Below are positions 4,611-42,469 of a stretch of DNA of 64,000 nt, one piece after another; position 1 is the first letter of the stretch; each line of letters begins with the position of its first letter. The stretch is from Penicillus capitatus (taxonomy: Eukaryota > Plantae > Chlorophyta): contig OZ287697.1 in NCBI GenBank assembly GCA_965649825.1, forward strand, positions 1,288,351 through 1,352,350. Direction: 5' to 3'. A model generated the notes under the pieces. It was not told the DNA's origin, made no database searches, and saw only the letters and a list, made by a program, of their open reading frames with translations. Made by a program: the position numbers and the translations under genes.

Positions 4611-4659
4611 GATGGTCTGCAGGCGTCTGCTGGATCCGTCTCTCAGTTCTTCGTCGAAA

Positions 4660-13994: not shown

Positions 13995-16900
13995 ATGCGA
14001 CGCCCTCGTTTCCTTGGTATGTTGTTGACGTGCGTGATGCTCGGCACAGACGCGAGCAAATTCACCTGTTCGAAATTCCCTCTTCGTCGAGGTCTAACCG
14101 CAGAGATGGCCGAAGATGCCCCGACCGCGTGTTCTTCCGACGGAATCTCAACCTCGAATCCGTCAGCAGTTTCAGAAAGAACGGCATTAGCGCCGCTTCG
14201 TGCGACGAAGACTGCCTCGCTACCGACGAGGCACGAGGACGAAGCGGCGGATTTGTTTCCCGCGTCCCAAGCGAGCAATGCCGCGAAGAAGAAACGTCCT
14301 TCCGTTGCTGGGCGAGGTCGGAGCTGGGGTCGCTCTCTGCGACAAGATGAAGGCCAAGACGACGAAATTTTTGCAAGTGAGACCCTGCTCATTCAGAAAA
14401 CGTTTTTGACGCCAGTTCTCTTGGTCTTTGCAGACATTTCGTGTTCGCTTAGTGAACGAACCATCCGAGAACATCTGAACGAAACGACGAGAACGTGGCG
14501 TATCAGTCGTTCGCTTCTCGATGACGTCGAAGATGACATCCAAGTCATTGTGAACTGCACGAAGCCAGGCGACGTCCTCACCTTCGGTCCAAGGCGAAGA
14601 ATTCGGCCGTCTTCGCGTATTGTCATACCATGGCCACTGACGTTGACAGCCCCAGTGAGCAGTTTTGAGCTCGAGGAAAGCATGTTCCCTCTTTCCGATA
14701 CAAAGATGACCTTCACCTGTCCTAACAGAGGAGAGGGTGTGTTCTTGGTGAAGTGAGCTTCGAATTCCCTTATCCACCGTTGTCTGATGCTGTTCTCGCG
14801 TTCAGGTCTAAGAATGTGACATTGGCGAATCTTGTGTTCGAAGACTGCGTGTTCGAATCTCGGAATCCTGGGTCCATCGTTGAAGTTGAAAACTGTACTT
14901 CAAGTCGCGATGGAGGCATCATTCAGCTATACCATGTCGGCTTCAGGAATAACACCCTGATCAAAGGCACGGGACTCGCAATGCAGTCTCCATCTTGCTT
15001 TGAGCTGGAGCTGATCGACTTCGTCTTCGAGAATAACACCTGCGACGATAGATGTGGTGCGATTTTGTCGGGACGAAATCGATTGAGAGACATCGTTATC
15101 CGGAACAGCATACCGTATGACCGTGAGAACAACAACACGGTAGTGTTCTATGCGTCTCCTGGATCTTTGACGTCAGTGGATCGCATGAACAGCACACAGA
15201 ACGGATGCTCAAGCCTCTACGTCGAAGGAGGAGCCTTGAACATGTCATATGCTGCCTTCTTTCGGAATTCGATCACGATTAGTCAGGATGGAGCGAGCAG
15301 TGCACCCCTGCAGTTGCACAATGCAACAGCGTCCATCAAAGATTGCCTGTATCGAGAGAACGAAGCAGAGTTCGGAGGAGTCATAAGTGTGGAAAGGAAC
15401 TCATCATGCAACATCGCCGACTGTCAGTTCAACAAGAACAGCGCGTCAACAGATGGTGGCGCCATCAACGTCGAAGACTCCGTGCTCTCGGTTCAGACGT
15501 GCAACTTCACCGAGGGATCTGCAAAAAATGGTGGAGGAATCTATGCATCCTCTTCCAATGTCTTTGTCGAGAACACCTTCGCATCCGACCTGTTTGCGGG
15601 TAGTGGTGGTGGATTCATCTCCAGCAGAACTTCCAGAATACGAATGCAAAACTGCCTGTTTGCTAACAACAGGGCTTCTGATGGTGGCGCTATCTACGTC
15701 GAAGACTCCATCCTCTCGGTTCAGAAGTGCAGCTTCACCGAGGGATCTGCGAGAGACGGCGGCGGAATCTATGCATCCTCTTCTAATGTCTTTGTCGAGA
15801 ACACCTTCGCATCCGACCTGTTTGCACGTGACTTTGGTGGATTCCTCTCCGGCAGTACTTCCGAGATACGTATGCAGAACTGCCTATTCTCAGACAACAT
15901 GGCTTCTGATGGAGGGGGCGTGATCGAATGCTATTCTAATTGCAGATTCTCGGATACGGGATCGAAGTACTCCGGCAACTCGGCTTATTCTGGCGGAGGC
16001 ATCTCCCTCACTGACAAATCCTCTGGGAACATCACCGACTGCCAGTTTGAGAAGAACAGTGCGTCAACAGATGGTGGCGCCATCTACGTCGAAGACTCCG
16101 ACCTCTCGGTTCAGAAGTGCAACTTCACCGAGGGATCTGCGACAGACGGCGGAGGAATCTATGCACTGTCTTCAGACGTTTCTATTCGGAGGACTGAAGC
16201 CTTTGACATGTTCGCCAGTGGACAAGGCGGTGCTATCTACTCTTCCGAATCAGTCTTCAAGATTATCAACAGCCAGATCTCGCATTGCGAGGCAGGAACC
16301 GATGGAGGTGCTGTTATGGGAAAACATTCATCGAGGCTTCTCTGCAGTGGCTGCACTCTGATCGAAAACAAAGCAACGCGCGGCGGAGCTATATTTTTTC
16401 AGTTCAAAAGCATTAGATCCATTTCCATACAATTGGACAATAGCATTGTTCTTAACAACTCAGCCGAATACGGAGGTATTCATGATAAGGCCAACATGAG
16501 AGGTGCACACTGTTCTTTATGTAGGTGGGATCCAAATCGCCGCTAAAAGGCCCTCCACATTACAGAAATGTCGGACAGAGCAGGATGAATGCATTGTCGC
16601 AGCCGTGGCGAACACTTCGATGATGAACAACAGAGCAAGGTCGGCAGGCGGTGCTGTCTTCATTGACACAGTGGCTGGTCTCCGACTGAACTGTTCTGGC
16701 GAATCGAAAGAACCGGAACTGCAATTCTATTCGAAAGAACAGTGGAAGTCCATGAAGCGCCTAGAATCCACCGACGATATCTGCCCATCCTGGAAAAACA
16801 ACACAGCTGGGAGATACGGATCGGATGTGGCTTCTGCCGTATCCGTTGTCCGAAAGAGGATCGTCAATGAAGAGACGGGAGAGCTGAGCTTGGTGAATGG

Positions 16901-19202
16901 GAATAATTACACCATATACAACCACAGACGCGGGAAGCCAATTCCCTTGATCGTCTCAACACCAGTGGATGATCTCGGACAAGGTCCGGCTGTTAATGCG
17001 AAGCAAGAAAACATCGAGGCTATGGTATCCTCACTGGATGGATTCTTCGTTGGAAGTGTCAGACTACCTTTAGACACTACTGTCGCGAACTTTAGCACCA
17101 TTGGATTTGTACATCCAGGCATGTACAAAGTTAAGATTGAGTTTGAAGGAGCAGACCTGGAGAGCTTTGAGATCACTGTGGAGGTGAAGCCATGTGAAAT
17201 GGGTGAAGTTCCTGTCGGAAATGGAACATTCTGCGAACCGTGCAGCGTTGCTTCTTACAACTTTTATCCAGAAGAGGACTTGGAATGCCATCCGTGTCCA
17301 GAGAATGGAGACTGCAGCAGTCAAGTCATCCTGCCAAACAGAGGATACTGGCACCGGACTCCTTGCGCAGAGCACATCCAGAAATGCTTCACAACAGAAG
17401 CGTGCGACAGTGGCCATCGCGAGGATGAGTTAGCACAGCGGACACAAGATGTACGGACATGTGATGAATTCGACGATCAGTACCTGCAGAACTACACAGA
17501 AGCGCAGTGCAGAGAGGTGCGGTTCAACTTTGTCTGTAGACTGCGTCCAGGGCTCTTTGGGTTTCAGGGGCACGAAGGACCACTCTGCGGCTCTTGCAAG
17601 AAATCATTTGGTAAATCTCACTCTTATCTCTGTGAGAAGTGCCTTTCGGACGTTATTAATGTCGTCCTAGTCGTTCTGTCTTTTTTTGTTCTGTTGGGGT
17701 TGTCTAGCATCACCATTAGAAGCAACCTCATCTCTGTATTTATATCGCAGCAGCGTCAACAAACACAAGTTCCTACGTTCTCTGCTGCATCCGCCAGTGC
17801 TCGAGCAGTTCCAACTGAGAGGGCGATTGAATTAGCAGTCTTGGGGAGTACCACAGATGGAGATCGTACTCATGGGCACTGTCAGGAAGCCGAACGTGCG
17901 CAATCTTTTGAAGATACAGAGCTTGCCAAACTGAAGGCCGACGAGCTTTATAAGGTTTAGCTTTCCCTATTGTCTGTTTTGTTCCTTTCCTTCTTACTGT
18001 TTGCTCTGCAGATTACAGTAAACTTTCTGCAAGTCACAGCCATAGCGATCTCTGCTGACGCGCAGTGGACACCCGAAATGGTCGCATTCTTCCAAGCTGC
18101 AGGCGACCAGGAGACATTCTGTTACACAGTCTCATGACACGTGGTGTGTTCTGCAGAGTTTATCGGTGCCGTCACATCAGAATCTGTGAATCTATCTGTG
18201 GATTGTCTTCCGTCAGACGGAACTCCTCTGCAGCGCTCCATCGCCGGTACACTCGTGGATGTACTGCAGCCGATCGCAGCCATATTCTTCTTTGCCATTT
18301 TCTGGCTGGTGATCAAGATCAGACAGAACAAGTCATGGACCTACCTGTTGAAGCGGTGTGTTCTCAGTACTCTCTCAGTCTTCTACATCAGCTACATCTC
18401 CATCAGCAGGACACTTGTCCAAATCCTCAACTGCGTTGAAGTCCACGATTCAAATGACACAACAAAAGTTTACTGGACAGTGGACACTAGTGTCGAGTGC
18501 TACAAGGAATCGCATGCCGCGCTGGCTTATCTGCTGGCGTGGCCATTCCTCGTGATCTTCACCTTTGGCTTTCCACTGGCCGTTGCATGCCTGGTCGCCA
18601 AAAAGGTTGCGGAAGATTACAAAGATGGCTGGATCTACGAAGCCGCCGGTTTCATGTATCAATCCTTCAGAAAGCGATACATCTTCTGGGAGTCTGTGAT
18701 CATGTTCAGAAAGGCTGTCCTCACCGTCGTGGTTGTCTTTTCTTACAAACTCGGATTTGACATCCAAGTCGTTATTGCTTCCTTCGTCCTTATTCTATCG
18801 CTTTACTTCCAAATGAAGTTCCGTCCCTATCGCGAAGAGTTCGATTCTCTCAATGACGTCGAGAGCCTCTCCATCTTGATCTCTTCTCTCACATTCGTCT
18901 GCAGCATCTTCTTTGGGGTTGATCACGTCTCAGATGCGGTTCATATGCTGATCAGTGTTCTTTTGTGCTTCACTAATGTTCTTTTCTTCCTTTACCTTAT
19001 CACTCTTTATGCGGTTTATTTCACAGCCGATTACCTGAAAAGTGTGCTGGTCAAAGAAGGCATTATTTCTGAAGAGTCGCACGGCGCCTTTCGGATTCTT
19101 GTTATTTATCTGATGGATTACCTGTTCATCATTGTGAAAAACACCTTGATGCGCTGGGGTCAACCTGTCAGGGCTCGGCGCTATCGTCGGTCCGAAGTCT
19201 GA
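13995..19202 (+). CDS. Gene B: same family, 1628 aa; helix type beta, stalk III, membrane class 2
   Basis: Exons 13995-14376, 14434-14752, 14806-16475, 16525-17516, 17568-17954, 18012-18102, 18157-19202 (4887 nt). Intron positions and phases are identical to gene A. Intron 6 needs a GC donor (CAG|GCGACC at 18103) to avoid an in-frame TGA. Confidence 0.85.
15452..15907 (+). repeat. In-frame internal tandem duplication of 228 nt (76 aa) in the gene B beta-helix
   Basis: GATGGTGGCGC occurs at 15452 and 15680. The units read DGGAINVEDSVLSVQTCNFTEGSAKNGGGIYASSSNVFVENTFASDLFA... and DGGAIYVEDSILSVQKCSFTEGSARDGGGIYASSSNVFVENTFASDLFA... Confidence 0.9.
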
Positions 19203-20644
19203 AGTTGCTACATTATGTTTCACATGTATTTCTTTGTGGTGGGAATGAAAAAGGAGATCGACGCCCTCCTCTTTTCGTCGCGTCAATGACATCCGATATC
19301 AGAAGAGGACTTCGATTGTCGATGAGTTTAAACAGATGTGTTTAATCGTATCTTTGCCGGTGTCAGACGATTCTTTTCGCTGTTCTCCTACTGTGGCAGG
19401 TAATCGCCGACACAGATCCTCGGAGACCATGTATAATTGGTCGTGCTTGCAGCCCCTTTTAGGTTAAACATCAGAGGCGCGACTGTGTTCAGTACAAGAC
19501 CAACGATCGACAGGCACAGAGACATAAATGACCAAGGCGAAGAATGAACGAAATGTGTAGGATAGAGTCCTCGGATACCATAGAGGAGCCAATCAATCTG
19601 TATGTAGGCCATCAGATGCATGACAAACCACGTTTGCGTTTATTTGTTTCTATTTTTGCAAACTTTCATTTGCAGTCCCAGTCTTGCTAACAGAAGAACC
19701 ATTGTCGGCAAGGAGAGCATGCATTCAGACAAACGCGTGAGACGCGAGACCATTCGGCTGCATAAAGCGTTTGCGTAAAACCCTTCACTCGCATATACAG
19801 AGTCTTGGCATGGAATGTGCCTTGTTCACAGTTATGACTCGTTGCTGTAGAGTACTTAAAACCATTAACCAGAAACGCACAGAATTACTGTCGATTCTGC
19901 ATCGACTTTAAACGGCTTAGCTGTTCGCCGCGGTCGGAGGTATAGAAATTGTGCTCTGTACTGTACCTTGTCCAAAATCAAATCTATCACTTCGGTCCTC
20001 GCACGTGCGTGATGTATGTCTGGTACGAACATTCATGAAACCAAATCATGAAGTTTGCTCGATACTGAAAAAGAGTGGTCTCAAGCTATTCAAAGCATGG
20101 ACGCAGATGACCGCATATTTATTTAGGACATGAACCAAGGGCATGGAAGGCCCCACCTTCCATGCAGTGTTCCACCGTGCGGTTTTCCATACCCGAACTC
20201 CATAACTGTTGAACTAAATGATAAATAACGAGGTGCCTGGAGCACCACAGCCCTAACTGAATCTGATGTTCTCCTTATGATGCGAGCAAGCTGCATAGGA
20301 GAAGGCACTGATCCACGAGCGATAGTACTGTGTATCCGGTCAAAAACGGCAGAATGCGCATAAACATACGAAAGGCATACCTACGGACACATCTCCGTCG
20401 GATGCTTTGAGTTGCAGTCGACCTGCCTCATCTTCAGGCAAGGCATCGGGTTGGATGGAACTCCGAAGCGATGGGCTTTCACGTGTCCTTACACTTGCCG
20501 TGGACTACTGTTGGTCACTGTTTCCTTAAAAAATCTGCTTCCGTTCTCTCGAGGAAGACCGTGGACATGTATATGTGGTGCGAGGCTAAAACGAGTGAAC
20601 GAGTGCCTTCGGTGCTGACACTCTAAATGCACAGCCTCAGGACA

Positions 20645-21045
20645 GATTCGCCGACGTCACGTAAGTGATAAAACAAGGTAGCAAAGCACGGTTCTATAAC
20701 AGCGATAGCAGCGGTTGCTTTGACACTGTCACCAGGACGCAGCCTGTGGACGGCGCGGTCCTTCCCGAGTCAAACTATGATCTGTGGTTGTTCACTGCAT
20801 GTCAACAAGTGTGGCTCTGCTCGACCTGAAAAGACGTTCAGGGGTCAGCTCGACGGACAGATGCTGGAAGAGGCACGTTGAGTTGGTTCTCCGTCCCATC
20901 GGAAGAACAAGGGGAAGCACGCGTGCATCATACACACCGACGCGTTGTCGCTGAGTCAGTTGCATAGTTGCTGCATCGGGAAAATTCTCACCTCATCTCC
21001 CAGCGGTTTCCGTGCAATAGGTCTCATTCCGTCTATAAAAGCCAC
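20645..21045 (+). promoter_or_regulatory. Upstream block of gene C with TATA box (GTCTATAAAAGCC, TATAAAA 21034-21040)
   Basis: The distal part (ATTCGCCGACGTCACGT..GATAAAACAA.GTAGCAAAG.ACGG) is shared with H. The proximal part is near-identical to the A block. Confidence 0.75.
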
Positions 21046-21098
21046 ACGGAGAGTCTGTAAGCGTCTGCAGGATACGTCTCGCAGTCCTTTAACGAATC

Positions 21099-24000
21099 AT
21101 GCGACGCCGTTTCCTTGTTTTGCTGTTGACGCTCGTCGTTTTTGCCGCAAGTGCGACCGCGTTCGTCTGTCGGAGGTTTTACCTAAGCCGAGCTTTGGCC
21201 GCAGAAACGGCAGAAGATGCCTCGACAACTTATGTTTCCACAAAGATTCTCAACTCAGAACCGTTCGCAGTCTCAGAAAGAAAGGCATCTGCACCGCCTA
21301 GTGCAAAAGAGTCTGCCTCGTTCCCGACGAAGCACTCGCACAGTACAGCTCCGCCCCTCACGTCCAAGACGCGCGAGACGGCAAAGAAAGAACGCCCATC
21401 TGTGGCTGGAAGAGGTCGGAGCGAGAGCCGTTCTCTGCGCCAGGACGATGGCCGCGACGACAATCTCACAAGTAAGGGCCCTTTGATGTCTTCGAGAGCG
21501 CTTTCTTGACGCCAGCGCTCTTGGCCTTTGCAGGCGTTCCTTGTTTGCTTAGTGAACAAAGAATCAGAGAACAACTGAACGTAGAAACAAGAACGTGGCG
21601 CATTAGCCCTTCGCTTCTCACTGACGTCGAAGATGACATCCAAGTCATTGTCGACTGTACGAAGCCCGGCGACGTCCTCTCCTTCAGTCCGAAGCGCAGA
21701 ATCCGGCCGTCTTCGCGCATCGTCATACCATGGCCATTGACGTTGACTGCCCCAGTGAGCAGTCCCGACGTCGAAGAGGGCCTGTTTCCTCGTTCTGACA
21801 CAAAGGCGATCTTCACCTGTCCGAGCGAGAGAGAAGGTGTATTCGTAGTGAAGTGAGCTTCGAGTTTACCCATCCGCCGTTGTCCGATGTCGATGCCGCG
21901 TTTAGATCGACGGGTGTTCTTTTCGCCAATCTGATCTTTGAGGGCTGCGCTATCAGTGCAGCGAACAGCAATGAAGACGCCATCGTCAGAGTCGACGTCG
22001 ACGACTGTGCATCGACTCGTGCAGACGATCAGCTGCGTCTGCACCACGTCGATTTCCGATATAACAGCCTCGCCGAGAACAACGCCATCCGAGTGCACTC
22101 ACCATCGTGCTTAAAGCTGGAACTCGTCGACCTTGGTTTCGAAGACAATACCTGCAGCGGTCCATGCATCGTCTTCCCGTCCAATCAAAGCAGTCGGCTG
22201 CGCGACATCAGAGTCCTGAACATCACGTCGTCGGGAAAAGCTGCCGACGCCACGACCGCGTTTTGGGGTCCTCCTGGTTCGAAGATTAGCGTCACTCGGC
22301 TGACAGCAGCCAACAACACGATCCAGATCTTTCGTATCGAAGACGGCACACTGGTGCTAAACGACTCGAAGCTGACGAACAACAGCGTGAGAGTTGGAAG
22401 TCCAGTCTATCTGTCAAAGTCCAATGGAACATTCGAAAACGTCAGCTTCGCTGGAAACGGTGCCACTCACAGCGCCGGATCCCTCATGTCGGACGACTCG
22501 GCGATCCACATTAATAACTGCACCTTCGAGGAGGGCAATGCCGCCGAATTCGGCGGGTTCGTCGACGCCGAAGAACATTCTCTGGTGACCATCAGAGACT
22601 CGAACTTCAGTCGTGGCCAAGCGAAGGACGGAGGATGTCTTCGAGTACATCTCTCAAATCTCACTCTTCATAACGTGACGCTGCGAGAGTGTCAGTCCGT
22701 GGTCGACGGAGCGGCGATTCGTCTGTCCAATGCGACTGCCAACATCACCACCGCGAGGCTGGATTCGAACAGAGCGGGCGACGATGGCGGATGCTTGTAT
22801 GCAGAGTTCTCCAATGTTGCCGGAGACGACTGGACCGTGAAGAACAACTCGGCTGGCGATCACGCAGGCGGACTCCGGGTGCGACTCGAGACGAATCTCA
22901 GTCTCTCCAACTCCGTTTTCCTCAACAACGAGGCAGACAGAGGGGGAGCCGTGTCTCAGGAGCTGGCTTCCGTCGTCTTTTTCACAGATGTCTCATTCTC
23001 TGGCAACGTTGCTGCGACCGAGGGCGGTGCGTTCTACATCACCAATTCGACGACGATCCTCAGCAACTGCGCTTTCAATGACAGCAGAGCTGATGATGGC
23101 GGTATCCTGTTCGCAAGGAAGATGACCACAGTGAACATTTCCTCGTCGATCATGAAGCATGGCACTGCGAGACGCGGGGGGTGCCTGCTCGCTCTCGACG
23201 GATCTGTCAATGTTACGAATTTGACGATGGAGAATTGCGCGTCCAAGGAGGACGGCGGGGCCATGCACCTGCGCAACATCGCAGCACACATCTCGAATTC
23301 CAGTTTTCTGTCGAATAGCGCAGAGGATAGTGGCGGAGCCGTCTTCGCCGATGAGAAGACCATTCTCGAAGGTCGGGAATGGTGCGTGAAAAACAACAGC
23401 GCCGGGGGCGACGGAGGTGGCGTTCTGTTGAAGCAGTCCACGATCCAAGTGAAGGACTCTCTCTTCCGAAACAACTCTGCCGTCTATGGCGGTGCCGTGC
23501 ATCAGAGCTCTTCCTCTAATGGAACGTTCTTCAACGCGACGATGATAAACAACACGTGCTCAAGGAATGGAGGGGCCTTCTTCATAGTCGATTCGTCAAG
23601 GCTGAATATCTCTAACTCTACGTTTCGTGATGGAAGCGCAGAAGACGACGGCGGGTTCGTTGCAGCCATCTCGAACAGCTCTGTCGATCTGGAGCATGCC
23701 AACATGAAGAATGGACACGCAACGAATGGAGGAGCCGTCTTCGCAGTCGACAGTCTCTTCAAAGGGGATCATCTCAGCGTCACCGAATGTTCCGCCAGTT
23801 CAACGGGCGGAGGATTCTCCTTCGAATCCGTAAACGCGGCAATGCTCACAGTTCAGCTTGATCACTCCATCGTGCAGAACAACACAGCTCGTCTAGGAGG
23901 TGAGGATACGCAGCCGCTCTCTCATGCGTCCGATGTGTTTTATCAGGTGGCCTGTATGTGACAAACAGCAGTGGACACCTCAACTGCTCGGAGGGCCACT

Positions 24001-26463
24001 CCGACTGCTTCCTCGTCACTATGCTGAACACGACTTTCGTGAACAACAGCGCTGCTTATGCAGGAGGAGCGGTGTTCATGGGCTGCACCCAGAATGTGCA
24101 CATCGATTGCCCTTCGAAGAATGAGGAGAAGACTGGTGGTGTCCACACAGAAAAGCGAAAGCGTTCTGTAGGTAGCCTCAATTCAACAAACGATGTTTGT
24201 GGGACATGGAAGAAGAACAACGCAAAACAGTATGGTGATGATGTTGCCACGTTCGTTTCCACGATTGTGGCAACGGTGAGACTCAACGGCGAAAACACGA
24301 CCGTCTCCAATACGAAGGATCCATGCCGAATCGGACCTTACAGAAGCGGAAGCTCCTTTCCCGTCGCTGTCAGAGCCGTTGACGATTTCGGACAGACTCC
24401 GGCGACCGGGAGAGATCATCGTCCTGTGGTATCCACAATTTCATCTCCAGACGATCTCTTCGCTGGAGACTACAGCATTCTCATGAATTCTGATCTGGAG
24501 TTCAATGTCACTGCTCACGCACGACCAGGCAACTACAGGATTCTCTTCGGATTCGGCGAAAAAACGCTGAGAGATTTCGAGATCGTGGTGGAGGTGCAGC
24601 GATGCAAGATCGGAGAAGAGTCGTCCGAAGACAAGACGTCCTGCGAGCCCTGCAGTGCCGCCACCTACAACTTTGACTTGGATGATGAAGACTCCGAGTG
24701 TCTGCCTTGTCCCGACAACGGAAACTGTACCACCAGAATCATCCTGCCCAATCAAGGCTATTGGCATCCGACACCCTGCTCTCCGCACATTCAGAAATGC
24801 CTTTCTACAGATGCCTGTAACAACGTCAGTCGGCAGCATAGACTGTTAGAACTCACAGATGATGTGGAATACTGTGACTTCAATGAAATGTTCATCAAGA
24901 ACTACACATTAGCTCAGTGTAGCGAGGTATGTACCTTGCCAGCATGTGGAGGCGAGCTCTATCGCCATGTGTTTTTAGGGATATGCAGGACCGCTCTGCG
25001 GTTCATGTGACATCGGTTACGGAATCGTCCAGTTCGTCTCTTGCGAAGAGTGTTTCTCGGATGCCGTAAATGTACACCTCGTGCTTCTGTCCCTTCTGGT
25101 CTTCTTAATCCTGACAGCGATCACCGTGAGAGCGAATCTGGGATCCACAATCCGCGATTCGTCGGCTCGTAAGATGATGGTCGAAGTCTTTAAGGCAAGC
25201 AATTACCTACATCGTTTTGCCTGATGCCAGATTTTTCGTCAGATTGCGGTGAACTATGCCCAAGTGACGGCCGTGGCTGTTTCGATCAACGTCTCCTGGG
25301 ACCTGAACCTGGTCCGACTATTCGAAGCTGCCGGTAACGACATGAAACATCGATCACCATCTGACGCACTCAGACGTCTGTGCATTCGTGTAGAGCTCGT
25401 CAGTGGAGTCATCGCTGATGCCATCGAACGGGCTGTGCACTGTCTTCTTCCCGACGGCGCCATCGTGGAGCGATCCGTTTTTGGCATCTTGATGGACATG
25501 GCTGCCGTCAGCATCGTCATCCTCATCTCCATCGTATTCTGGTTCACTGTCATGCCGTCCAGTCCTCGGGACTGGACATACCTCGCGAAGAGAGCGTTCC
25601 TCAGTGTCGTCGTCGTCCTTCATCTGGGCTACATCTCACTGACGAGCACCTTCATCAGCATCCTTAACTGCATCGAGGTCAATGAAGTGACGGAGACCAT
25701 GGAAACGGCCGCAACACAATACTGGACTACAGACACCAGCATTCGATGCCACGAGGGATCACATGCGATGCTGGAACGCGTCGTGGGCTGGCCCGGTCTG
25801 ATCTTGCTCTCTCTGGGATTTCCCCTCATCACCGCGTGCGTCATCTCTCTGGGCAAACAGACGCACAGGAACGAGGGATGGACTCAAGATCTCTTCGGTT
25901 TCATGTATCAATCCTACAAAGACAGTCACTGCTACTGGGAGTGTGTCGTCATTGGACGGAAGGCTGTCATTGCTGGTGTTGTCGTTCTTGCCTATCCACT
26001 GGGAGCCAGTCTCCAAGTCATGTTTGCTACCTTCGTCTTCACCGTCGCCCTCTACCTGCAAACAGCCTGTCGACCGTTCAGAAACGATCTCGATCTGCTG
26101 AACAACCTGGAAAGCTACTCCCTGCTCATATCGCTTCTGACGTTCATATCCAGTCTCTGCTTCGATACGGATCGTCTCTCGTCGAGTGCTCGTCTTTCTA
26201 TCGGCGTAGTGATATTGCTGCTCAATCTGCTGTTCTTTTTCTTCCTTTTGGTAATTCTATTGAGATCCATGGCAGACCATCTCAGAAATGTGCTTACGAA
26301 TCAGAATGTCTTATTTGATGCCGACGCAAGTCGACTGCAAGTGTTGGCAATCTATTTTATGGATTATCTGCCCGAATCTGTACGAAATGCAATTTGCATG
26401 TGGGCCAGTTTGTTTGCTGCACTTTATGACAAACCTGAGGCTGAAGACTGTCAAACGCCTTAG
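21099..26463 (+). CDS. Gene C: same family, 1680 aa; helix type alpha (near-identical to A), stalk II (G-like), membrane class 3 (F-like)
   Basis: Exons 21099-21471, 21534-21852, 21906-23899, 23947-24926, 24979-25194, 25243-25333, 25394-26463 (5043 nt). Intron 5 has a GC donor (AAG|GCAAGC at 25195). Confidence 0.87.
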
Positions 26464-26604
26464 CCATTGCAGCTTTAGCATTCTTCCCTGACATGTCTGA
26501 ACCCTCTCACTTAATCACACTGTTTTCTCGGGTCACACAAAAGCAGTTCGTTCACTGAAACAATGACCATTATCGTTTCTTGTCATTATGTGACGATGCC
26601 GGAA

Positions 26605-27083
26605 TGGAAGGCCGTCCTCGCAGTCGTTTTCGTCTTTTCTTACGAAATGGGTTCTGCCTCCATGCTGTTCTTACGTCATCCGTCCTAATCGCACCCCTTC
26701 ATCACTTCCAGACAGAATTGTCCCTACAGCGAGGAGTTTGATTCCATCAGTAATGTAGACAGCCTTTCCATTCTGCTTTCATTACTCTCTTTCGTCTGCG
26801 ACATCCTCTTTGGGGATGATCACGCTCCACAAGAGATCCGTGTGCTAGTCATTGTTTTCCTGCTCTGTATAAACACTATCTTTCTGTCTTTTTGGCCTGT
26901 CTTGTTTTCTTTGCAGTGGATCTGGAAACGGTGCGTCGGGGAAAGAATTTATTCTTCGCCGACACATGCACATTTCGCATTCTCTGCGTGTATTTTTAAT
27001 GCTTCTGTATTGATGTGAAAGATGCTTTAGTGCGATGCATCCATCATGGCAGATCTCGTCGCTCTGTATACTCCGAAATTTGA
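26605..27083 (+). pseudogene. Degenerate 3' end of a class-2 membrane-domain gene
   Basis: Translates in pieces as KAVLAVVFVFSYEMG…PYSEEFDSISNVDSLSILLSLLSFVCDILFGDDH..EIRVLV…GRSRRSVYSEI*. It is followed by the TGAAGTTGCT.. 3' flank seen after B, H and the first gene, and contains frameshifts. Confidence 0.8.
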
Positions 27084-28189
27084 AGTTGCTCTATCCTGGC
27101 GTACATTTCTTGCTGTGTGTCAAAATGAAAAGGGCGATTGCTTAACTTCTCCCAGCTTTCATTGTTAGAATGCTTTCGGGTATTAAGGAGGACATCAACA
27201 TGTATTAAGGTGGACAATTGTTTAAATAGAAACGTCTCATTGTTGTGTGACCTAGTCTCCGTTCGTCTCTCTGTGTGCTGCGATATCTATCTCCTAGACA
27301 TGAAGCGTAGGAGACAAATGTCTCACACTGTGAGAGTGATATCTCGATTCCGATTCCGGAACATGCAGAAAGGAGCATGTTCCAGATGCTCTGCGTTGCC
27401 TTTGTAGATTCTTCTGTCCGGGACGGAAGTGAACATCACCTACGTCTGTCAATCATCACGCTCTCTGTGTCACTACAGATGTTCGAGCGGTATGTCGAAT
27501 GATGACGATCCATACGTCATTTCTAAAAAGCTAAGGTAGGACAGAGTGTAAGCATGACGACGTCGCTAACGACATTCAAATATCTCACTTAAGTATAGGA
27601 GTGGCAACTGTCTAATGAACTCGATGAAACAGACGCGATATCGACTTTGGACTTATACAGAAAGTCCCCCTGCTACGAAATTAGTCAAATTCTGAAAACG
27701 GACTGTAGGGGAGTATACACTATGTGACGCAGATGCTTTCTTCTAACTGAACGCGTTACAAGAGACACACACAAGCGTGCAAAGTTGTTAAGTGTCTTTA
27801 GAACTATGTCACCATACAACGTGATCTTGAACACGAGCAGTAAGACCACGCCACGAGATGGCGAGAAACGCGTTAGTGGTCGGTCATCGGACAGTTCGTC
27901 GTCGAATCTTTCACGAGGATGAGAAGACAGTCGTTAACACAGGATGCATTCAGTTTCTGAGGCCTGTAGCGAAGAGATATTATGTTTTGTTAAAGAAACC
28001 AGACGTTTCAAAGCTAGACACCCTCATGAATGCTAGGCCGCATGTCGTCTAAACCATACATGCACTTCTACCTCTAAGACGATTATCTTATAAGTGATAC
28101 ACAGGGATGTGCAGAATGAATTTTCTTTGGATTTGGCTTTAGCTGGATCACTGTCTCATCTTGCCGGGTATACGAGTGGTTATTCGCAT

Positions 28190-28395
28190 GTCGATCGGAG
28201 GCCATCGATCGGATCGCAGTGGATCGGAAGTAATCGATTGAAATAAATCGATCCGATCCGATCCGATCCGATCGCAGTCGATCGCAGTCGATCGGAAGCA
28301 ATCGGGCAGACAGCAGTCGATCGGAAGTACTCAATCGGAATTAATCGATCTGATCGGATCGCAGTGGATCGGAAGCAATCGGACTGATCGATCAC
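28190..28395. repeat. GATC-rich degenerate microsatellite (5-mer units GATCC/GATCG/CAGTC, with higher-order GGATCGCAGTGGATCGGAAG copies)
   Basis: ATCGATCCGATCCGATCCGATCCGATCGCAGTCGATCGCAGTCGATCGGAAG. GGATCGCAGTGGATCGGAAG occurs twice (about 28210 and 28356). Confidence 0.85.
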
Positions 28396-29369: not shown

Positions 29370-29455
29370 ATGGAGGTGAACACCCGACCGATTGCTCGCA
29401 TCTCCACCATCAACATCTGCGTTTCACTTCCAGTCGTATAGAATGACGTCCGCGC
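29370..29455 (-). repeat. About 80 bp dispersed repeat also at 33165-33240 (possible degenerate beta-helix fragment)
   Basis: CACCCGACCGATTGCTCGCATCTCCACCATCAACATCTGCGTTTCACTTCCAGTCGTATAGAA versus CACCGACCGATCGCTCGCATCTCCACCATCGACATCTGCGTTTCGCTTTCAGTCGTATAGAA. The minus-strand translation SFYTT(G/E)SETQM is reminiscent of VFYAPPGSETSV. Confidence 0.7.
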
Positions 29456-29526
29456 GCAGCCATATCCGCGACTGGTTCGCGCATGAGTCAGGATTAATGT
29501 GCAAATCTGAATCTTTAATGAATGTT

Positions 29527-32355
29527 TTACAAACGTCGGTTTTTCATGGAGCCACAATCGAACATAGAAGATGCGACAATCGGTCCATATCTGCCAGCTG
29601 AATTATTCTCCCAGGATGCACAGACGTCATCAATGGATGCGAGGCGCTTCATGGACTTCCACTGCTTCTTTGAGTAGAACTCCAGTCCCTGTGCTTTCGA
29701 TGCATCTGAGCAATTCAGTCGGAGACCAGCAACTGTGCTGATATAGATAGCACCACCTGCCGACCTTGCTCTGTTGTCCACCAGCGAAGTGTTCACCACA
29801 GCCGCAACGATACACTCTTCCTGTTCTGTCAGACAGTTCTGCAGGACGGACTGCCTCTTGGCCACAACGTGAAGCCCTCCTGCACAAAAAACAGCGTGTT
29901 AACGTTCTCTTTTATCGGCCTTTTCGTGAATACCTCCGAACTCGGCTGAGTTGTTCTTAAGCGTGCTGTTGTCGAGCTGTATGAAGATGGATTGAGTGTG
30001 GTTGTGCGCCAGGAATATGGCGCCGCCATAGCTTGCTTCGTTGTCGATCAGAGTGCAGCCACTGCAGAGCAGCCTCGATGAATCATTGGCCATGATGCCA
30101 CCCCCATCGGTCTTCGCCTTGCACTGCGAGATCTGGACGTCGTTCATCCTAAAGACAGATTCGGAGGAGAAGATAGCGCCGCCTTGCCGTGATCTCCCTG
30201 CGGTTATCGAGCATCGTGACATACGGATCGAAGAGCCCTCTGCTGCGATAAAACCGCCTTGCTCGGTGACAGAGTGGCCAAGTGCGTTGGTCTCCCAGAT
30301 AGAGACGTTTGAAGAGATTGAGTAAATTCCTCCTCCGAAATCTGCGGAACCATCGGTGAAGTTGCACCTCGAAACTGAGAGATCAGTTTTGTAAACGCTG
30401 ACGGCACCAGCACGATTGGATGCATCATTCTTGTCAAATTTGCAGTCGGTGATGTTCGCCGTGGAGTCAAGGGACAGCTCAAGTGCGGCGGCAATGTATG
30501 CCGTGTTGTGAGAGTAATTTGATCCAGTGTCAGTGAACCTGCACCCGATGTCACAGTACAATACACCTCCTCTGGCGGCCTTGTTACCATAGAATGAACC
30601 GCCACTGATGTTTATTTGGAGACCTTCACTGTCTGACATATAGCCTGTACCGTAGATAAATCCTCCTTCGCTCGCAGTCAGATTGGAAGCTGACGTGTTC
30701 CAGATAGAGATGTTTGAGAGCAACGCGAAAATTCCGCCGCCGAATCTTTCTGCAGATCCACCAGTAAAGCGGCACTTTTGAACTGAGAGCACGGAGTGCT
30801 CGACGTGAACAGCTCCACCAGATAGGCGGCGTGCGAGATAATTAACTCCGAATTTGTCAAGATCAAAACCGACAGAGAACGCACTGTTGTTGTCAAACTG
30901 GCAGTCGATGATGTTGCCAGAGGAGTTCTTTTCCAGACGTATGGCCCCTCCGTTCACTGCTTCGTTCTCTCGAAAGAGACAACCTTTGATGGACACTGTT
31001 GCATTCTTCAAGCGCAGCGACGAACTACTCACATCATCCCAGAAAACCGGGATCATATTCAGAGAAAGTGCAACCGGGATCGAATTCCGCACAAATCCAA
31101 CCTCTTTCATATCCAGATATCCGTCCTGAACTTCGATGCTTGAGCATCGGTTCTCCGAGCTGTTCATGTGATCGACTGACGTTTCTGATCCAGGAGGCGC
31201 ATAGAACACCATCTTATCGGTGTTTGTTGACTCGGATGGTTCGTTTTGATAAACGACGACGTCTCTCAGTCGATTCCGTCTCGACAGGATAACGCCGCAT
31301 CTGCCATCGCAGGTGTTGTTCTCGAAGACGAAGTCGATCAGCTCCAGCTCAAAGCAAGATGGAGACTGCATGGCGAGTCCTGAGCTGTTGATCAGGGCGT
31401 TACTTCTGAAACTGACATGATGGAGCTGGATGGTGTCTTTGATGTGATTGGAAGTACAGTTTTCAACTTCAACGATGGACCCAGGACTCTCGGAGTCGAA
31501 CGAGCAGTCCTCGAAGACCAGATTGGCGAGAAGTACACCCGTCGACCTAAACATTTAAGCAACGTCATACTTCAGTACCTAGGGACTCAAAGCTCACTTC
31601 ACAAAGAAGATGCCCTCTCTTCTGTTCGGACAGGTAAAGAGCGCCTTTGCTTCGGAAAGAGGGAACACGCCTTCTTCGACGTCGGAACTGCTCACTGGGG
31701 CAGTCAACGTCAATGGCCATGGTATAACGATGCGCGAAGACGGTCGGATTCTGCGCTGCGAACTGAAGGAGAGGACGTCGCCTGGCTTCGTACAGTTGAT
31801 TATGACTTGAATGTCATCTTCGACGTCATCGAGAATAGAACGGTTGATATGCCACGTTCTCGTCGTTTCGTTCAGATGTTCCTCAAGGCTTCGTTTAGTG
31901 AGCCAACAAGGAAAGTCTGTAAAAACAAATGGTACTTGAATCAGGAAAGAGTTCTCAAGGAGAGGAAGGGTCTCACTTTCAGGGGCTTCGTCGTCAAGGC
32001 CGTCATCTTGTCGCAGAGAACGGCTCTCACTCCGACCTCGCTTAGCCACGGATGTGCGTTCTTTTTCATCAGTCTCGCCTGTCCGAAACGTGGGGGACGA
32101 ATCCGCCGCGTCGTCTTCGTGTCTCGTCGGGAACGAAAGAGTCTCCGTCACGCGAGGCGTCGCAGATGTCATTTTTTCCCAGAGCGTCGAAGGATTCGAA
32201 TTCGGTTTCTTGCCCGAAAACGACTCGGCCGGAGCATCGTCGGCCGTCGTTGTAGTCAGAGCTCGGCGGATATAAAACGTGCGACTAGCAAATTTGTTCG
32301 CGCTTGCGCCGAACACTATGCATATCAACAGCAAACCAAGTAAGGTATGTCGCAT
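29527..32355 (-). CDS. Gene D: 3'-truncated family member with an intact ORF (887 aa: signal, pro-region, N-cap, beta-helix; no stalk, Cys-rich or membrane domain)
   Basis: Exons 32355-31977, 31916-31598, 31546-29934, 29879-29527 (2664 nt), all GT..AG. Homology to the family stops after ...AGRYGPIVASS (about 29565), and the frame ends 13 codons later at TAA. Confidence 0.78.
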
Positions 32356-32379
32356 TTTTCGTCAGGTGATTCAAAGACA

Positions 32380-32870
32380 ACTTTGACAAACTCTTGTAAA
32401 CCGTGCGGCTTTTATAGTCGAAAAGAGGACAGCTGTGGTATGAAAATCTGATGAAGATGAGGTGTACGTGGCCTGTCTGTAGCAGCTACTGTCCAACTGC
32501 CATCGTGACGCCTCTTCGGACACGGGATCCAGCCACGTGTCCCATGGTCTCCCGCTCCTGAATGCAAAAAGCGTAGCGACTCCTGTGACCGCGACGGATA
32601 GCCGTGAGCGGCGCAATCGCAGAACAAACGAGGCACCGCTACTTCGCGTTTCTCTTATTCAATCGATTCTCACTCTCGAGAAGTGTTATCAGATGACCGT
32701 GGTAAGGAGCAACGATAGGCTTCCTTCGTCGCACACGTTAAACTCGAGCGGCAACAAGACTACGAACACATCTGGAGTCTTCTTTTATGACAACTAAACG
32801 ACGCGGAATCGCCTTGAGCGTGTCGCGTTATCCTTGCAAATGGATTCTTTGGCGCCTTTAGGCATGGAAG
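32380..32870 (-). promoter_or_regulatory. Upstream block of gene D with TATA box (TATAAAA 32416-32410), shared with gene E
   Basis: Colinear with 38930-39415 (CGGCTTTTATAGTCG, ATCCAGCCACGTGTCCC, CCTGAATGC, ATCGATTCTCACT, TTCCT.CGTCGCA, TCTTCTT.TATG.CA). This block type differs from the A/B/C/H upstream block apart from the TATA element. Confidence 0.7.
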
Positions 32871-33768: not shown

Positions 33769-36700
33769 TTACATGCCAGAAGAAAAACTTGATTCATCGG
33801 GAGACCGGCCAAATCCCACATAGGGAGCCAAGGACTGGAGATTGCAGCCCAGCCAGATCGTCAGAATCTTCAGTGTTCCGGCATCTGCATCGATGCGCGT
33901 TCCGCATTCGCTCATGGAGAGCTTAATGCACGTAACACAGTACTTGAAAAGAAAAGAGAGATAAAGGAGAAAGGCAGAGATGTTGAGAACAACACAGATG
34001 ATCGAGAGCGTCATTACACGCCACTCTTTGTTGAGACCCTCACTCCCCAGTATGCTGGCTATTGAGATCGTCAAGTGCGAGACAAAAAGGGCAGACAGAT
34101 CGATTCTGTTCAGGATATCAAATTCCTTTCTGTAGGGCATCGCCGCCATCTGCACTCCCATCGCAAGCATGATGAAGATGGCGAGGAATGTGATAAAACC
34201 CAGACTGTCAAAGCGGTGGGCACAGAACACCAGAAAAGCAATGATCGCCTTCCTCAGCACGATGACAACTTCCCAGTAGCGCCGCCACCCGGATCCATAT
34301 CCACGGTACAGAAATCCAGTAGTTCGATACACCCACCTATCCGGATGATCGAGCAGTTCCTTGGGCGATGTGAGGATGAAGATAAAGACGATGAGAAGTC
34401 CGAGATAGACGATGCTCACGAATGGGAGAATCCAGATCACCAGTATCAAGTGCTGGCCCTCAAAGCACTTCAAATTTGTGTCAACTGCCCAGTAACTAAT
34501 CTCTTCCTCCTTTGTCGCGACTATGGTCTCATCATCGTTCTGTGTTCCATCCAGAACGTTGTATACACGAACGCAGAGAACAACGCTGAGTGTTGTCTTG
34601 ATCACTGATGCGGAGGTTATGTACCAGAGTGCCATGAGTGAAAGCAAAGATCTCTGTGCGATGTAACGGAGTGGCCGTTGGATTTGATGGAGGAGTGCTA
34701 CTGCTATCCAGAACGCAATGAGCAGCAGGAATGCAGTAACAGGAACGATCGAGCTGCTCACGATCGTTCCCCAAACGGTCGGACGAAGAAACTGCTTTGC
34801 CCTGCTCAGACAGACAACGGAGCGCCGGATGCTCTCTGCGGCGAGTCCGCTGATGAACTCTATACAGCAAGCACACAATGATGATGAGGTGATGTGGATG
34901 ATTGACATCAGCATCTGCGGACCTGCCATTTCTCCCACAATGAGAACCGGAAATGCCCATCCAACATTCAAGGTTGCAATCAGCACTGTCACTTGGATGT
35001 AGTTCAGCGTTATCTGCAGTGCCGGTCGCTGTCAGGAAAGAAGACGCGCAGGATCGTTACACCTTGAACATCTCGGTGACTCGCCATTGTGCGAGGGTCG
35101 CTTCAGTCACATGCACCATTCCTGTTGATGCGTTTGTCCCTTCAACCTCGTGTGATCTGTCAGGAGGATCCTCTATTCTAGGAGTTTCTGCCGTGTCTCG
35201 GGTCGAAAGATCTGATAGTTGAATGCTACGGGAAATCCGTCTCTGCCCGGAAAGCATCATCCGTTGGCGGTTTTTAGTGCACAATGTTCCCCTGATCGTA
35301 ATCCCGCATAGAAACAGCAGAATCACTGCTGATATGCAAATCACCAGTACACTTCCGATTCTCACAGGGCACTCTTGACATTTGGAAGACAGGGAACTGC
35401 CGTATGAACTGTTACAAGATCCACAGAGTGGACCAGTGTAACCCTGCATGCACAACAGTGACCATCGATGTCTAAGCAAATTAGAATCTCAAACTTGCCT
35501 CTTCACACTGTGCCTGTTGGTACTCCTCGATTCGTTCCTTGCTAATGTTACAGGTGAGTATGTTCTGCGTCTTTTGCTCCAGTTTCTCAACGCGTTCTTT
35601 ACTATGGCATGCGTCTGAGCTCAGACATTTTCTGATGTTCGTCGAGCAGGGTGATGCGTGCCAATGTTCCTCGTTTGGCAAGATGACTTGACTGCTACAG
35701 TTTCCGTTCTCTGGACACGGATGACATTCCATATCCTTCTCTGGAAAGAAATTGTAAGAGACGGTACTGCAAGACTCGCAGAATGTTCCATTTCCGGAAG
35801 GAACTTCACCCATTTCACACGGCTTCACCTCCACAGTGATTTTGAAGCTCTTCAGGTCTGCTCCTTTAAACTCAATCTGTACTTTGTACATGCCAGGCTG
35901 CACGAAGCCGGTGGCACTAAAATTCGCGTCTTTGACGCCCAGAGATCTTCTAACACTTCCGACAAAGAATTCATTTGGTGAGGACATCACAGCCTCGATG
36001 TCTTCTTGCTTCGCATTTACAGCCGGACCTTGGACAAGGTCATCCACTGCTGTTAAGACGATCATGGGAATTGGTCTTCCGCTTCTGTGATTGTGTATGG
36101 TGTATTTACTCCCATTCACCAACCTCAGCATTCCCGTCTCTTGATCGGTAATCTCCTTCTGGACATAGGACACGGAGGATGCCACATCCGATCCGTATCT
36201 CTTAGCTGTGTTGTTTTTCCAAGATGGGCAGATGTCGTCGACGGATGTCAGGCGCTTCATGGACTTCCACTGCTTCTTTGAATAGAATCGTGTTTCGTGT
36301 TCTATCGATTCGTCGGAGCAGTTCAGTCGGAGACCAGCCACTGTGCCAATGAAGAGAGCACCACCTGCCGACCTTGCTCTGTTGTTCATCAGAATAGAGT
36401 TCGCCACAGCCGCTACTCTACATTCAACCAGTTTTGCCCGACACTTCTGCAATATGGACTTCGTTTCAGCGGCGATTTGGATCCCTCCTACGTAAAGAAC
36501 GGCGTGAATCTCGGTTTCTGTTAGCATCATCATAAGTACCTCCATATTCGGCCGAGTTGTCGAAGACATTGCTATTGTCCAGTTGCATAGAAATGAACTG
36601 AGTATAACTGTACTCGAAGAATATGGCACCTCCACGACTTGCATTGTTCCCGATCAGAGTGCAGCCACTGCAAAGCAGCTTCGATGAACGAGTGCCCATA

Positions 36701-38904
36701 ATGGCACCTCCACGACTTGCATTGTTCCCGATCAGAGTGCAGCCACTGCAAAGCAGCTTCGATGAACGAGTGCCCATAATGGCACCTCCACGACTTGCAT
36801 TGTTCCCGATCAGAGTGCAGCCACTGCAAAGCAGCTTCGATGAACGAGTGCCCATAATGGCACCTCCACCGGTCCCTGCCTCACACTGCGAGATCTGTGT
36901 GTCGTTGATCTTGAAGACAGACTCGGAGAAGAAGACAGCGCCACCTTGCTCACTGGCGGACATGCGAAAAGCTTCAGTCTTCTGGATAGAAACGCTTGAA
37001 GAGGATGCATAGATTCCTCCGCCATTTTTTGCAGATCCCTCGGTGAAGTTGCACTTTTGAACCGAGAAGATGGAGCCTGCGACGTTGATGGCGCCACCAA
37101 ATCTGGATGCGTTGTTCTTGTTAAACTGACAGTCGGTGATGTTCCCAGAGGATTTGTCAGTGAGGGAGATGCCTCCGCCAGAATAAGCCGAATTGCTGGA
37201 GTACTTCGATCCCGTATCTGAGAATCTGCAATTATAATAGCATTCGATTACGCCCCCTCCATCGGAAGCCATGTTGTCTGAAAATAGGCAGTTCTGCATA
37301 CGTATCCTGGACGTATAGCCGGAGAAGAATCCGCCATACTGATTGGCAGACAGGTCGGATGCGGAGGTGTTTTCGACAAAGACATTAGAAGAGGATGCAT
37401 AGATTCCTCCGCCGTCTCTCGCAGATCCCTCGGTGAAGTTGCACTTTTGAACCGAGAGAACAGAGTCTTGGACGTAGATGGCGCCACCATCTGTTGACGC
37501 GCTGTTCTTGTTGAACTGACAGTCGGTGATGTCGCATGATGAGTTCTTTTCCACACGTATGGCTCCTCCATATCCTGCTTCGTTCTCTCGATACAGGCAA
37601 TCTTTGATGGAAGCTTTTGCATTTTTCAACTGTAGGGTTGAACTCCTCGTATCATATCGTCTGTTCGGAACAGAATTCTGATAGAAGACAGCCTTCGACA
37701 TGTCCAAGACGCCTTTAACAACCTTCATACTCGGGCATTCGTTCTGTGTGCTGTTAATACCATCCACTGACGTCTCTGATACAGGAGGTGCATAGAACAA
37801 TACCGTGTTCGTCTTCTCAGGGTCGTACTGTTTGTTCTTCTGGATAACGATGTCTCTTAATCGATTCCGTCTGGACAGAATCACGCCACATCGGCCGTCG
37901 CAGGTGTTATTCTCGAAGACGAAGTCGATCAGCTCCAGCTCAAAGCAAGCTGGAGACTGCATGGCGAGTCCCGTGCCTTTGATCAGGGTGTTATTCCTGA
38001 AGCTGACGTGGTGGAACTGAATGGTGCCTCTGATGCGACTGGAAGAACATCTTTCAACCTTCACGATGGATCTAGAACTCCCAAATTTGAAGAAGCAGTC
38101 CTTGAATACCAGATTGGCGAAAAGGACACCCGTCGACCTAAACGCGCATCAACATCAGACAACAACAGATGTGAGAATTCAAATCTCACCTCACCAAAAA
38201 GACGCCATCTCTTCTGCTCGGACAGGTGAAGACTGCCTTTGCTCCGGAACGGGGGAACACGCCTTCCTCGAGCTCGGGACTGCTCACTGGGGCTGTCAAG
38301 GTTAATGGCCATGGTATGACGATGCGCGAAGACGGTCGGATTCTGCGCTTCGAGCTGAAGGAGAGGACGTCGCCTGGCTTCGTACAGTTCACTATGTCTT
38401 GGATGTCATCTTCGACGTCAGCGAGAAGCGAAGGGTTAATGCGCCACGTTCTCGTCGTTTCGTTCAGATGCTCGCTAAGGGTTCGTTCGCTGAGAGAACA
38501 AGGAAAACCTGCGAACACCAAGAGCGCCGGCGTCAAGCAGGTGTTCTCGAAGACAGCAAAGGGCCTTCCTCACTTGTAAGATTATCGTCGCGGCCATCGT
38601 CCTGGCGCAGAGAACGGCTCTCGCTCCGACCTCGGTCAGCCACAGATGGACGTTCTTTCTCAGCAGTTCTGTGCGTCGTGGACGCGGCGGTCTCTGTCGT
38701 GAGAGGCAGTGCAAATGGCCTCCTTTCTTGGAACGCGAACGGATCTGAGGCTAAGGGTTTGGCGAAAAAGAAAGTGGTCGGAGCATCTTCGATTGTCGCT
38801 GCCGTCAAAGCTCGGCGGAGATAAAGCCTCCGACACGTGAATTCCTTCGCACTTGCGCTAAACACTATGCATGTTAGCAGCACACTGAAGAAAAGATATC
38901 GCAT
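33769..38904 (-). CDS. Gene E: same family, 1599 aa; A-like exon 1 end and intron 1, B-like helix and stalk, A-like Cys-rich end and membrane class 1
   Basis: Exons 38904-38574, 38508-38190, 38137-36540, 36487-35499, 35443-35063, 35013-34923, 34859-33769 (4800 nt). Intron 4 has a GC donor (GAG|GCAAGT at 35498), as in gene A. Confidence 0.87.
36623..36869 (-). repeat. Perfect 3x78 bp in-frame tandem repeat (GAIMGTRSSKLLCSGCTLIGNNASRG x3) in gene E
   Basis: ATGGCACCTCCAC occurs at 36623, 36701, 36779 and 36857, and the intervening 78-mers are identical. Confidence 0.95.
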
Positions 38905-39415: not shown

Positions 39416-39479
39416 TCTTCCAAACGTGGAATTAATCTGAGCGAACTGTATTTGTGTGACCCCAGAAAACAGGGTTATC

Positions 39480-42321: not shown

Positions 42322-42469
42322 AGTTCAAATGATGTCAAGTCAAGCACGAAGCCGATCTGTACAGACAATTGACGATGTACTGTTTCAAACAGGAAAGTTC
42401 AAATGATGTCAAATCGAGCACGAGGTCAATCTATGCAGATAATCGATAAAGTGAAGTTTCAAACAGGAA
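42322..42469. repeat. Diverged 2x74 bp tandem duplication in the 3' flank of gene G
   Basis: AGTTCAAATGATGTCAA occurs at 42322 and 42396, and both units end in GTTTCAAACAGGAA. Confidence 0.8.

Follow-up and report, generated by a model that had tools for sequence, protein, structure and literature searches.

The exchange of sequence among tandem surface or receptor genes has been described in the resistance-gene clusters of plants. In the var genes of Plasmodium falciparum, the exons that recombine average 63% identity (PMC4270465), and 50-mers of low folding energy at domain borders have been proposed as a mechanism of recombination (PMC3936766). Here we describe an abrupt change of relationship inside one gene, gene C, of a tandem family in a green alga, located on a stretch of 64,000 nucleotides from Penicillus capitatus (contig OZ287697.1, positions 1,288,351 to 1,352,350). 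This whole stretch is referred to as the window, and positions are those of the window unless another record is named. The identity change in gene C is a real recombination boundary, situated within an exon and at a conserved motif; the junction at that motif, as judged from the neighbouring sequences, would belong to two relatives of the gene, A and Z, and not to C itself. The feature is ordinary gene-family mosaicism of the kind produced by pervasive in-frame interlocus gene conversion, a process that is already known, and what is new here is the gene family and the host.

The array resembles the resistance-gene clusters in its tandem patchwork of paralogues, its short tracts bounded on two sides, its in-frame chimeras, and its truncated copies and orphan fragments (here genes D and F). 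It differs from them in that the host is a green alga and the protein family uncharacterised, and in that gene types of ~45-55% identity are joined through 5-8 bp of identity inside conserved motifs. With the var genes (PMC4270465; PMC3936766) it shares in-frame, architecture-preserving chimeras of low-identity paralogues and breakpoints at short identical stretches and, perhaps, domain borders. However, the events described here are evolutionary footprints as opposed to observed mitotic events, and we saw no sign of variant expression, immune evasion or subtelomeric location in the algal array; we would regard the var-gene parallel as a lead and not as a result. The likeness to chlamydial Pmp proteins lies in the GGA(I/L/V)/FxxN repeats (Pfam Chlam_PMP) and the predicted beta-helix ectodomain, whereas the algal gene is eukaryotic, with introns, a signal peptide, and a multi-pass helical tail in place of the autotransporter barrel. 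Only the repeat fold is held in common.

The window carries eight or nine copies, labelled A to I, of a ~6-kb gene whose introns are short and of the GT-AG type, and is part of an array of >115 kb made up of roughly 6-kb paralogous genes; further paralogues (A', C', Z, M, J and K) lie to either side on the same contig. Programmed variant-surface systems pair one expression site with silent donor cassettes and switch within the lifetime of the organism; in this array truncated or orphan copies (D and F) do occur, but full-length open genes make up the majority. All comparisons were made on assembled contigs. The window is the reverse complement of ~462.5-526.5 kb of the record ctg340394_13x_l (ENA assembly ERZ25074695, 576,620 bp), and its 350-residue open reading frame at 23958-25010 is identical to the protein called on that contig. 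Three flanking loci come from the same contig, with L004 and L007 upstream of the window start and L001 downstream of the window end. Gene A' occupies 1-5250 and C' 6668-12560 of L004, J occupies 6383-12720 of L001, and Z lies between L004 and the start of the window. Two further loci come from related genomes. L005, from another sample (a 4.08-Mb contig at 180x), shares synteny with L001 at ~78-80% nucleotide identity and carries the orthologue of J, here termed Jo; L008, from the same sample as ERZ25074695 (a 1.46-Mb contig at 41x), stands at ~77% nucleotide identity and served as the outgroup.

Each gene of the array is predicted to encode a large membrane protein with a beta-helix ectodomain built of PMP repeats. 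In gene C, a signal peptide is followed by Chlam_PMP/beta-helix repeats, a conserved block (C..W..N.A..YG.DVA), a variable beta-rich region, a Cys-rich region, and a multi-pass membrane tail consisting of a series of hydrophobic helices. Pfam recognises Chlam_PMP (PF02415) in this gene at 27 bits against a cut-off of 20.6, together with a weak Ephrin_rec_like match; on the tail of gene C it returned no match, including none to a beta-barrel family, and a weak TRP-like match was seen on one paralogue. The YG.DVA motif closes a block that is conserved in 15/15 family genes examined (the invariant columns being W, N, A, Y and G), and type-specific sequence then follows. The exon in question, exon 4 (23947-24926), stands between intron 3 (23900-23946, 47 nt) and intron 4 (24927-24978). 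An AlphaFold2 model of this exon from a 12-sequence alignment was too poor for a fold search or for the placing of a domain border (pLDDT 41.5), and in it the motif residues, 95-100, precede the first strand of the only moderately confident beta-rich part. The gene and its motif are placed as follows.

21099-26463, forward strand: gene C, from translations and Pfam
24231-24248, forward strand: YGDDVA of gene C, the last six codons of the conserved block

Gene C was compared with A and G in a three-way alignment, and identity to A, G and J was calculated by segment:

23778-24054: C-A 277/277; C-G 45%; C-J 43%
24055-24071: C-A 14/17; C-G 13/17; C-J 13/17
24072-24247: C-A 171/176 (97%); C-G 80%; C-J 81%
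24248-24266: C-A 9/19; C-G 18/19; C-J 15/19
24267-24926: C-A 57%; C-G 84.5%; C-J 98.8%

An earlier note, made from the letters of the window, had described C as nearly identical to A through late exon 3, intron 3 and early exon 4, and the first of these segments, which spans exactly those parts, is identical at every one of its 277 positions. The same note had the relative of C change abruptly inside exon 4 at a motif conserved throughout the family, and had ascribed this to homologous recombination rather than exon shuffling. These points are borne out by segment identity and by the breakpoint test described below: identity to A stands at 97% in 24072-24247 and at 47-57% from 24248, the motif (YGDDVA, 24231-24248) recurs in all 15 genes, and both junctions that we recognise lie within exon 4, although the recombination may have been either homologous or microhomology-mediated. 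The peptide quoted for C beyond the switch is likewise correct and resembles that of G. The description of C as G-like from there on holds only in part, however, as DNA identity to G is just 84.5% and the closest relative is J (98.8%), a gene outside the window to which C is so close only in 24267-25025.

The position of the switch was obtained with the maximum chi-square breakpoint test on informative sites (MaxChi, 2000 permutations). With A and J as parents of C (543 informative sites) the break falls at 24244-24248, and with A' and C as parents of A (289 sites) it falls at 24242-24248; none of the 2000 permutations was as extreme in either case, nor for C with parents A and G or A with parents A' and C'. 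When G is taken as the second parent, the last site at which C agrees with A and not with G is 24233, and the first at which it agrees with G and not with A is 24239. Because the latter site, which is synonymous, also separates C from C', the switch is firmly bounded at 24242-24248. This junction, J2, lies 296 bp into the exon from intron 3 and 680 bp short of intron 4, and the reading frame is kept across all junctions. A second junction, J1, lies 113-122 bp inside the same exon, and with both positions thus removed from the intron boundaries, intron-mediated exon shuffling is ruled out.

Assignment of the motif junction to one gene or another depends upon the paralogues outside the window. 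Two ancestral gene types can be distinguished from the alignments, termed here alpha (A' and the outgroup gene of L008) and gamma (J, G and Jo). On this classification, C and C' consist of an alpha head and a gamma body, and A and Z are alpha genes with a 176-bp gamma patch. The elements concerned, and the tracts around them, are these.

24059-24068, forward strand: J1, junction of alpha head and gamma body in the C lineage (MaxChi, C as A' then G; C positions 3316-3325)
24072-24247, forward strand: gamma segment of C, C', A and Z, at 97-99% mutual identity, a foreign patch in A and Z
24242-24248, forward strand: J2, 3' border of the gamma patch, at which A and Z depart from C and C' (MaxChi, A as C then A', Z as C' then A'; +11 to +17 from the Tyr codon)
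24248-24266, forward strand: native gamma sequence of the C lineage between two tract borders (18/19 with G, 15/19 with J, 9/19 with A)
23778-24054, forward strand: recent conversion tract between C and A, including intron 3 (277/277 identical)
24267-25025, forward strand: conversion tract shared by C, C' and J, crossing intron 4 and ending in the first codons of exon 5 (98.8-99.8% identical)
7555-7730, forward strand: gamma patch in gene A, the presumed recipient copy, from the coordinate map of the alignment
7714-7731, forward strand: YGDDVA of gene A, from the alignment

Identity between A and A' is 43% within the patch, 96% before it and 95% after it, and past the motif A' is again like A (95% in 24248-24266, and 97-100% to ~24635). 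The outgroup alpha gene is collinear with A' across the patch, with 83% identity to A' versus 41-43% to A, Z and C, and its similarity to C ends at 24070; because the outgroup follows A' here, the A' arrangement is taken as ancestral for alpha genes. J and its orthologue Jo are gamma on either side of the motif. Identity of C to G is steady across it (79% and 80% in the 212-bp flanks; 80%, 95% and 85% by segment), and identity of C to Jo is 80% before and 75% after. Up to the motif Z is 99-100% like C', and beyond it the likeness is to A (96-100%). A and Z are the copies singled out by the outgroups as altered at J2, and as the gamma character of A is limited to 24072-24247, with alpha sequence to left and right, in contrast to A' and the outgroup, the motif junction would belong to A and Z. 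The proposal of the earlier note that C is itself a chimera at the motif does not survive this comparison, in which A and Z carry the patch that ends there and C is gamma on both sides, its own junction being at 24059-24068.

The left-hand border supports a similar distinction. At bases 24068 and 24071, A retains the alpha base, unlike C, C', Z, G and J, which agree with one another; since C is already gamma at these bases, its gamma block begins to the left of the patch in A. J1 itself is inside an 8-bp identity, GCAGGAGG, which is the GGA motif of a PMP repeat and stands ~180 bp upstream of J2. At J2, the only identity between native alpha and native gamma sequence is GTTGC and, two bases on, CGTTCG. 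The short sequence from 24248 to 24266 is matched by G and not by A or J, and for this reason is considered native to the gamma sequence of the C lineage.

Two later exchanges surround these junctions. In 23778-24054, C differs from C' at 8 sites and there agrees with A, and mostly with A'; as C departs from C' toward A, A is the likely donor and the exchange probably ran from A to C. This tract is separate from the motif switch and ends 190 bp before the motif. Within 24267-25025, C and J differ at 0-6 positions per 100 bp, and on either side at 11-21 (83-89% identity past 25025); because divergence is high on both sides, the stretch is a conversion tract of limited extent, which a crossover would not give. 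Three tracts are thus bounded at both ends, namely the segment 24072-24247 in A and Z and the C/A and C/J tracts, and these bounds, as well as the mosaic pattern, its statistics and the ancestral states, are direct observations. The heads of C, C', A, Z and A' form a fine patchwork of 70-100% identity.

The explanation that we consider probable (roughly 0.7) is an exchange of short in-frame segments between the paralogues, either through interlocus gene conversion or through unequal recombination, and we infer the order and direction of the events, and their resolution in microhomology, to be as follows. A gamma gene would have gained an alpha head at J1 (24059-24068), in GCAGGAGG, to give the C type, which would later have been duplicated as C and C'. 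An alpha gene would then have gained C-type sequence up to J2 (24242-24248), with the 5-bp identity GTTGC, within the YG.DVA codons, as the point of resolution, to give the alpha-gamma-alpha genes A and Z. Later conversions may have re-homogenised what homology remained, from A to C in 23778-24054, between C' and Z up to the motif, and between C or C' and J in 24267-25025. As there is no usable homology 3' of the motif, exchanges between the C type and the A/Z type must end there, and it is because they stop there that identity collapses at KQYGDDVA.

Certain observations weigh against this history. A different order could fit equally well, in which an alpha gene received the 176-bp patch directly from the gamma ancestor of C and C then took its head from that alpha gene. 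The exchange between C and J may have run in either direction. In 24072-24247 the sequence shared by C, A and Z, and those of G, J and Jo, all stand at ~75-82% from one another, a spread that singles out no member of the gamma clade as donor of the patch. Furthermore, A has alpha bases at 24055, 24068 and 24071 within C-like sequence, for which patchy repair or an additional micro-event is needed.

A simpler account would have C made by a single homologous crossover at YGDDVA, A-like to the left and G- or J-like to the right. Such an event would explain at one stroke both of the close borders, at 24242-24248 and ~24267, as well as the sharpness of a switch before which C is 97-100% like A and from 24267 is 98.8% like J, and C does resemble a recipient of A sequence in 23778-24054. 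We nevertheless find this account unlikely, because A is gamma-like only in 24072-24247 and alpha on its flanks, which sets it apart from A' and the outgroup, and because C is gamma at 24068 and 24071 where A is not. Moreover, 24248-24266 matches neither proposed parent, identity of C to G is continuous over the motif, and the fall of C-J identity past 25025 makes the J-like part a bounded tract. A single crossover would additionally require an unsampled gamma donor, 97-99% like C, as the source of the patch in A. A junction of this sort may also be created by an assembler that joins A-like and J-like reads at a shared motif, and the modest coverage (13x per the contig name) and the identical stretches of up to ~1 kb in this family speak for such an error. 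However, C' repeats the structure of C in a different flank, within a 10.4-kb duplicate that is 95.8% identical to window positions 17218-27638, and Z repeats the structure of A. Bases specific to C stand on both sides of the junction (24189, 24197, 24239 and 24266), C has lineage-specific sequence at 24248-24266, and the identity at the junction, only ~8 bp, is too short to mislead a long-read assembler. Misassembly appears very unlikely on these grounds.

A further question is whether the motif is a true hotspot, at which a hairpin-forming palindrome (24243-24274) would provoke breaks or stall repair synthesis. Two more features bear upon this point.

24243-24274, forward strand: imperfect palindrome with 14-nt arms, 86% complementary, and a 4-nt loop
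29566-29589, reverse strand: YGPIVA of the truncated gene D, with the point where homology is lost; D ceases to resemble B, E, I and K at 29566-29569, 6 bp past YGPIVA

Gene D is a head-only copy (29380-32463, reverse strand) with a stop codon 14 codons past YGPIVA. The 66 bp at 29384-29449, 117 bp beyond the end of the D homology, match the 3' flank of E, and the evidence indicates that D probably lost ~2.8 kb by internal deletion. The truncation of D at the same motif, as previously proposed, is therefore upheld, its homology ending only 6 bp after YGPIVA. In favour of the hotspot that had been suggested from it, three borders (the D deletion, J2 and the point at which the C/J tract starts) fall within ~30 bp, but the events are few and their coincidence is largely forced, since homology between the gene types ends at the motif.

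As to the hairpin, the palindrome sits exactly at the switch, and few structures in C, C' or G are more stable: the 44-nt hairpin (-12.0 kcal/mol) ranks in the top 0.4-0.7% of windows (0.4% in gene C). When the 50-mers of gene C are ranked by stability, those placed second and fourth cover J1 and J2, the fourth being 24244-24293, and low-energy DNA structure at J2 is a likeness to the var genes, for which such structure has been proposed as a mechanism (PMC3936766). On the other hand, counted by position the two 50-mer matches amount only to 0.019 and 0.039, the test was post hoc, and the 121-nt fold around the switch is unexceptional (z-score -0.92). Five other junctions (including A' as A then B, A as Z then E/K, Z as A then H, and G as J then H) showed no unusual structure in product or parents, and the alpha recipients, as represented by A', lack the hairpin. 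In contrast to the proposal for var genes, junctions in this algal family are not generally associated with DNA structure. With the meeting of borders at the motif mostly explained by the end of homology, we consider a structure-driven hotspot doubtful, and the idea of a hotspot at the motif, resting as it does on two or three events, is suggestive only.

Exchange in the array extends beyond the motif and into the tails. Relative to the motif, A' passes from A-type to B-type sequence at +558, A and Z part at +771 to +780, and G passes from J-type to H-type at +657 to +669. A second border region was noticed in the first codons of exon 5 (G.AGPLCGSC; 8485-8492 in A, 24951-25026 in C), where A and Z diverge to different tail types and the C/J tract ends, and the tail switch of G is near the end of its exon 4. 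The in-window gamma relative has its motif here:

44884-44901, reverse strand: YGDDVA of gene G

Within 39400-48770 (reverse strand), gene G has a gamma head and middle and, from ~44241, a tail of B/H type; ~1.5 kb past its end is the orphan fragment F (40990-39400, reverse strand), a tail of C/J type. Together, G and F resemble a J-like gene whose own tail has been displaced by ~3.3 kb bearing another tail, and they are read in this manner because J and Jo carry the tail type of F. Two broader scans for such borders were of limited use: a pairwise identity-jump scan was too crude, missing the C/J border and being dominated by alignment artefacts, and a scan for long identical tracts yielded single mismatches within longer tracts and not clean borders.

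Other forms of rearrangement were observed in the same array. Gene E contains a perfect 78-bp tandem repeat (36623-36869) of 3.2 copies and 26 codons per unit, and PMP-repeat coils are duplicated in tandem in B (228 bp x2, 86%, 15452-15912) and in H (705 bp x2, 82%, 52800-54210). Tandem repeats also occur between genes, at 28184-28371 (97 bp x1.9) and 42322-42471 (74 bp x2.0). A retroelement is present inside the array, in the form of a reverse-transcriptase (RVT_1) open reading frame between C' and Z (L004 17182-17703). An Rfam scan of the window gave no match. On a separate contig of half coverage (ctg330099_6x_l, locus L003), M, J and K are found in the order seen in L001 with a slightly different J, which resembles G in one head stretch where the J of L001 does not; this locus represents either the second haplotype or a duplication of very recent date.

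Beyond these contigs, HMMER was run exhaustively with the tail as query and gave 2,836 homologues. Among 20 long matches that were looked up, 17 are gene models of Caulerpa lentillifera, one is Ostreobium quekettii CAD7699384.1 and two are without an organism name; word-indexed protein searches matched only copies on these metagenome contigs, none of them named. The Bryopsidales proteins (Caulerpa lentillifera EukProt EP00210 models and Ostreobium quekettii CAD7699384.1) are homologous in the C-terminal membrane domain, with E values down to 1e-61, and alike in overall architecture at 1,500-2,000 aa, but differ in that their tails are only 25-37% identical to those of the array proteins. Several of the Caulerpa models are closely numbered (g3773, g3776, g3781, g3785 and g3791; g7128 and g7132; g6361-g6429), and these near-consecutive numbers suggest that the family is arrayed in Caulerpa as well. 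Our search of the literature found no published function or recombination analysis for these Bryopsidales proteins. Judged by the affinity of these homologues, the host is probably a siphonous (bryopsidalean) green alga. The family seems to be confined to bryopsidalean green algae and to have been represented hitherto only by gene models.

It is tempting to regard the array as a dedicated diversity-generating locus, in which conserved motif codons that bear palindromes (GCAGGAGG at J1, and YG.DVA with the hairpin at J2) serve as preferred recombination joints, although we hold this to be quite improbable. Were it the case, whole ectodomain modules would be swapped in frame between otherwise unalignable paralogues, and a var-like, structure-guided shuffling would exist outside parasites, perhaps in the service of self/non-self or microbe recognition. 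In any case, the three sequences available in the window named the wrong recombinant, and it was the neighbouring paralogues and two outgroup genomes that moved the junction from C to A and Z. In-frame exchange of modules at microhomologies of 5-8 bp, between paralogues of ~50% identity, is best known from parasite antigen families; its occurrence in a free-living or endolithic alga, while overturning nothing established, is of interest for the evolution of gene families, and the locus documents an uncharacterised and rapidly reshuffling family of giant membrane proteins.

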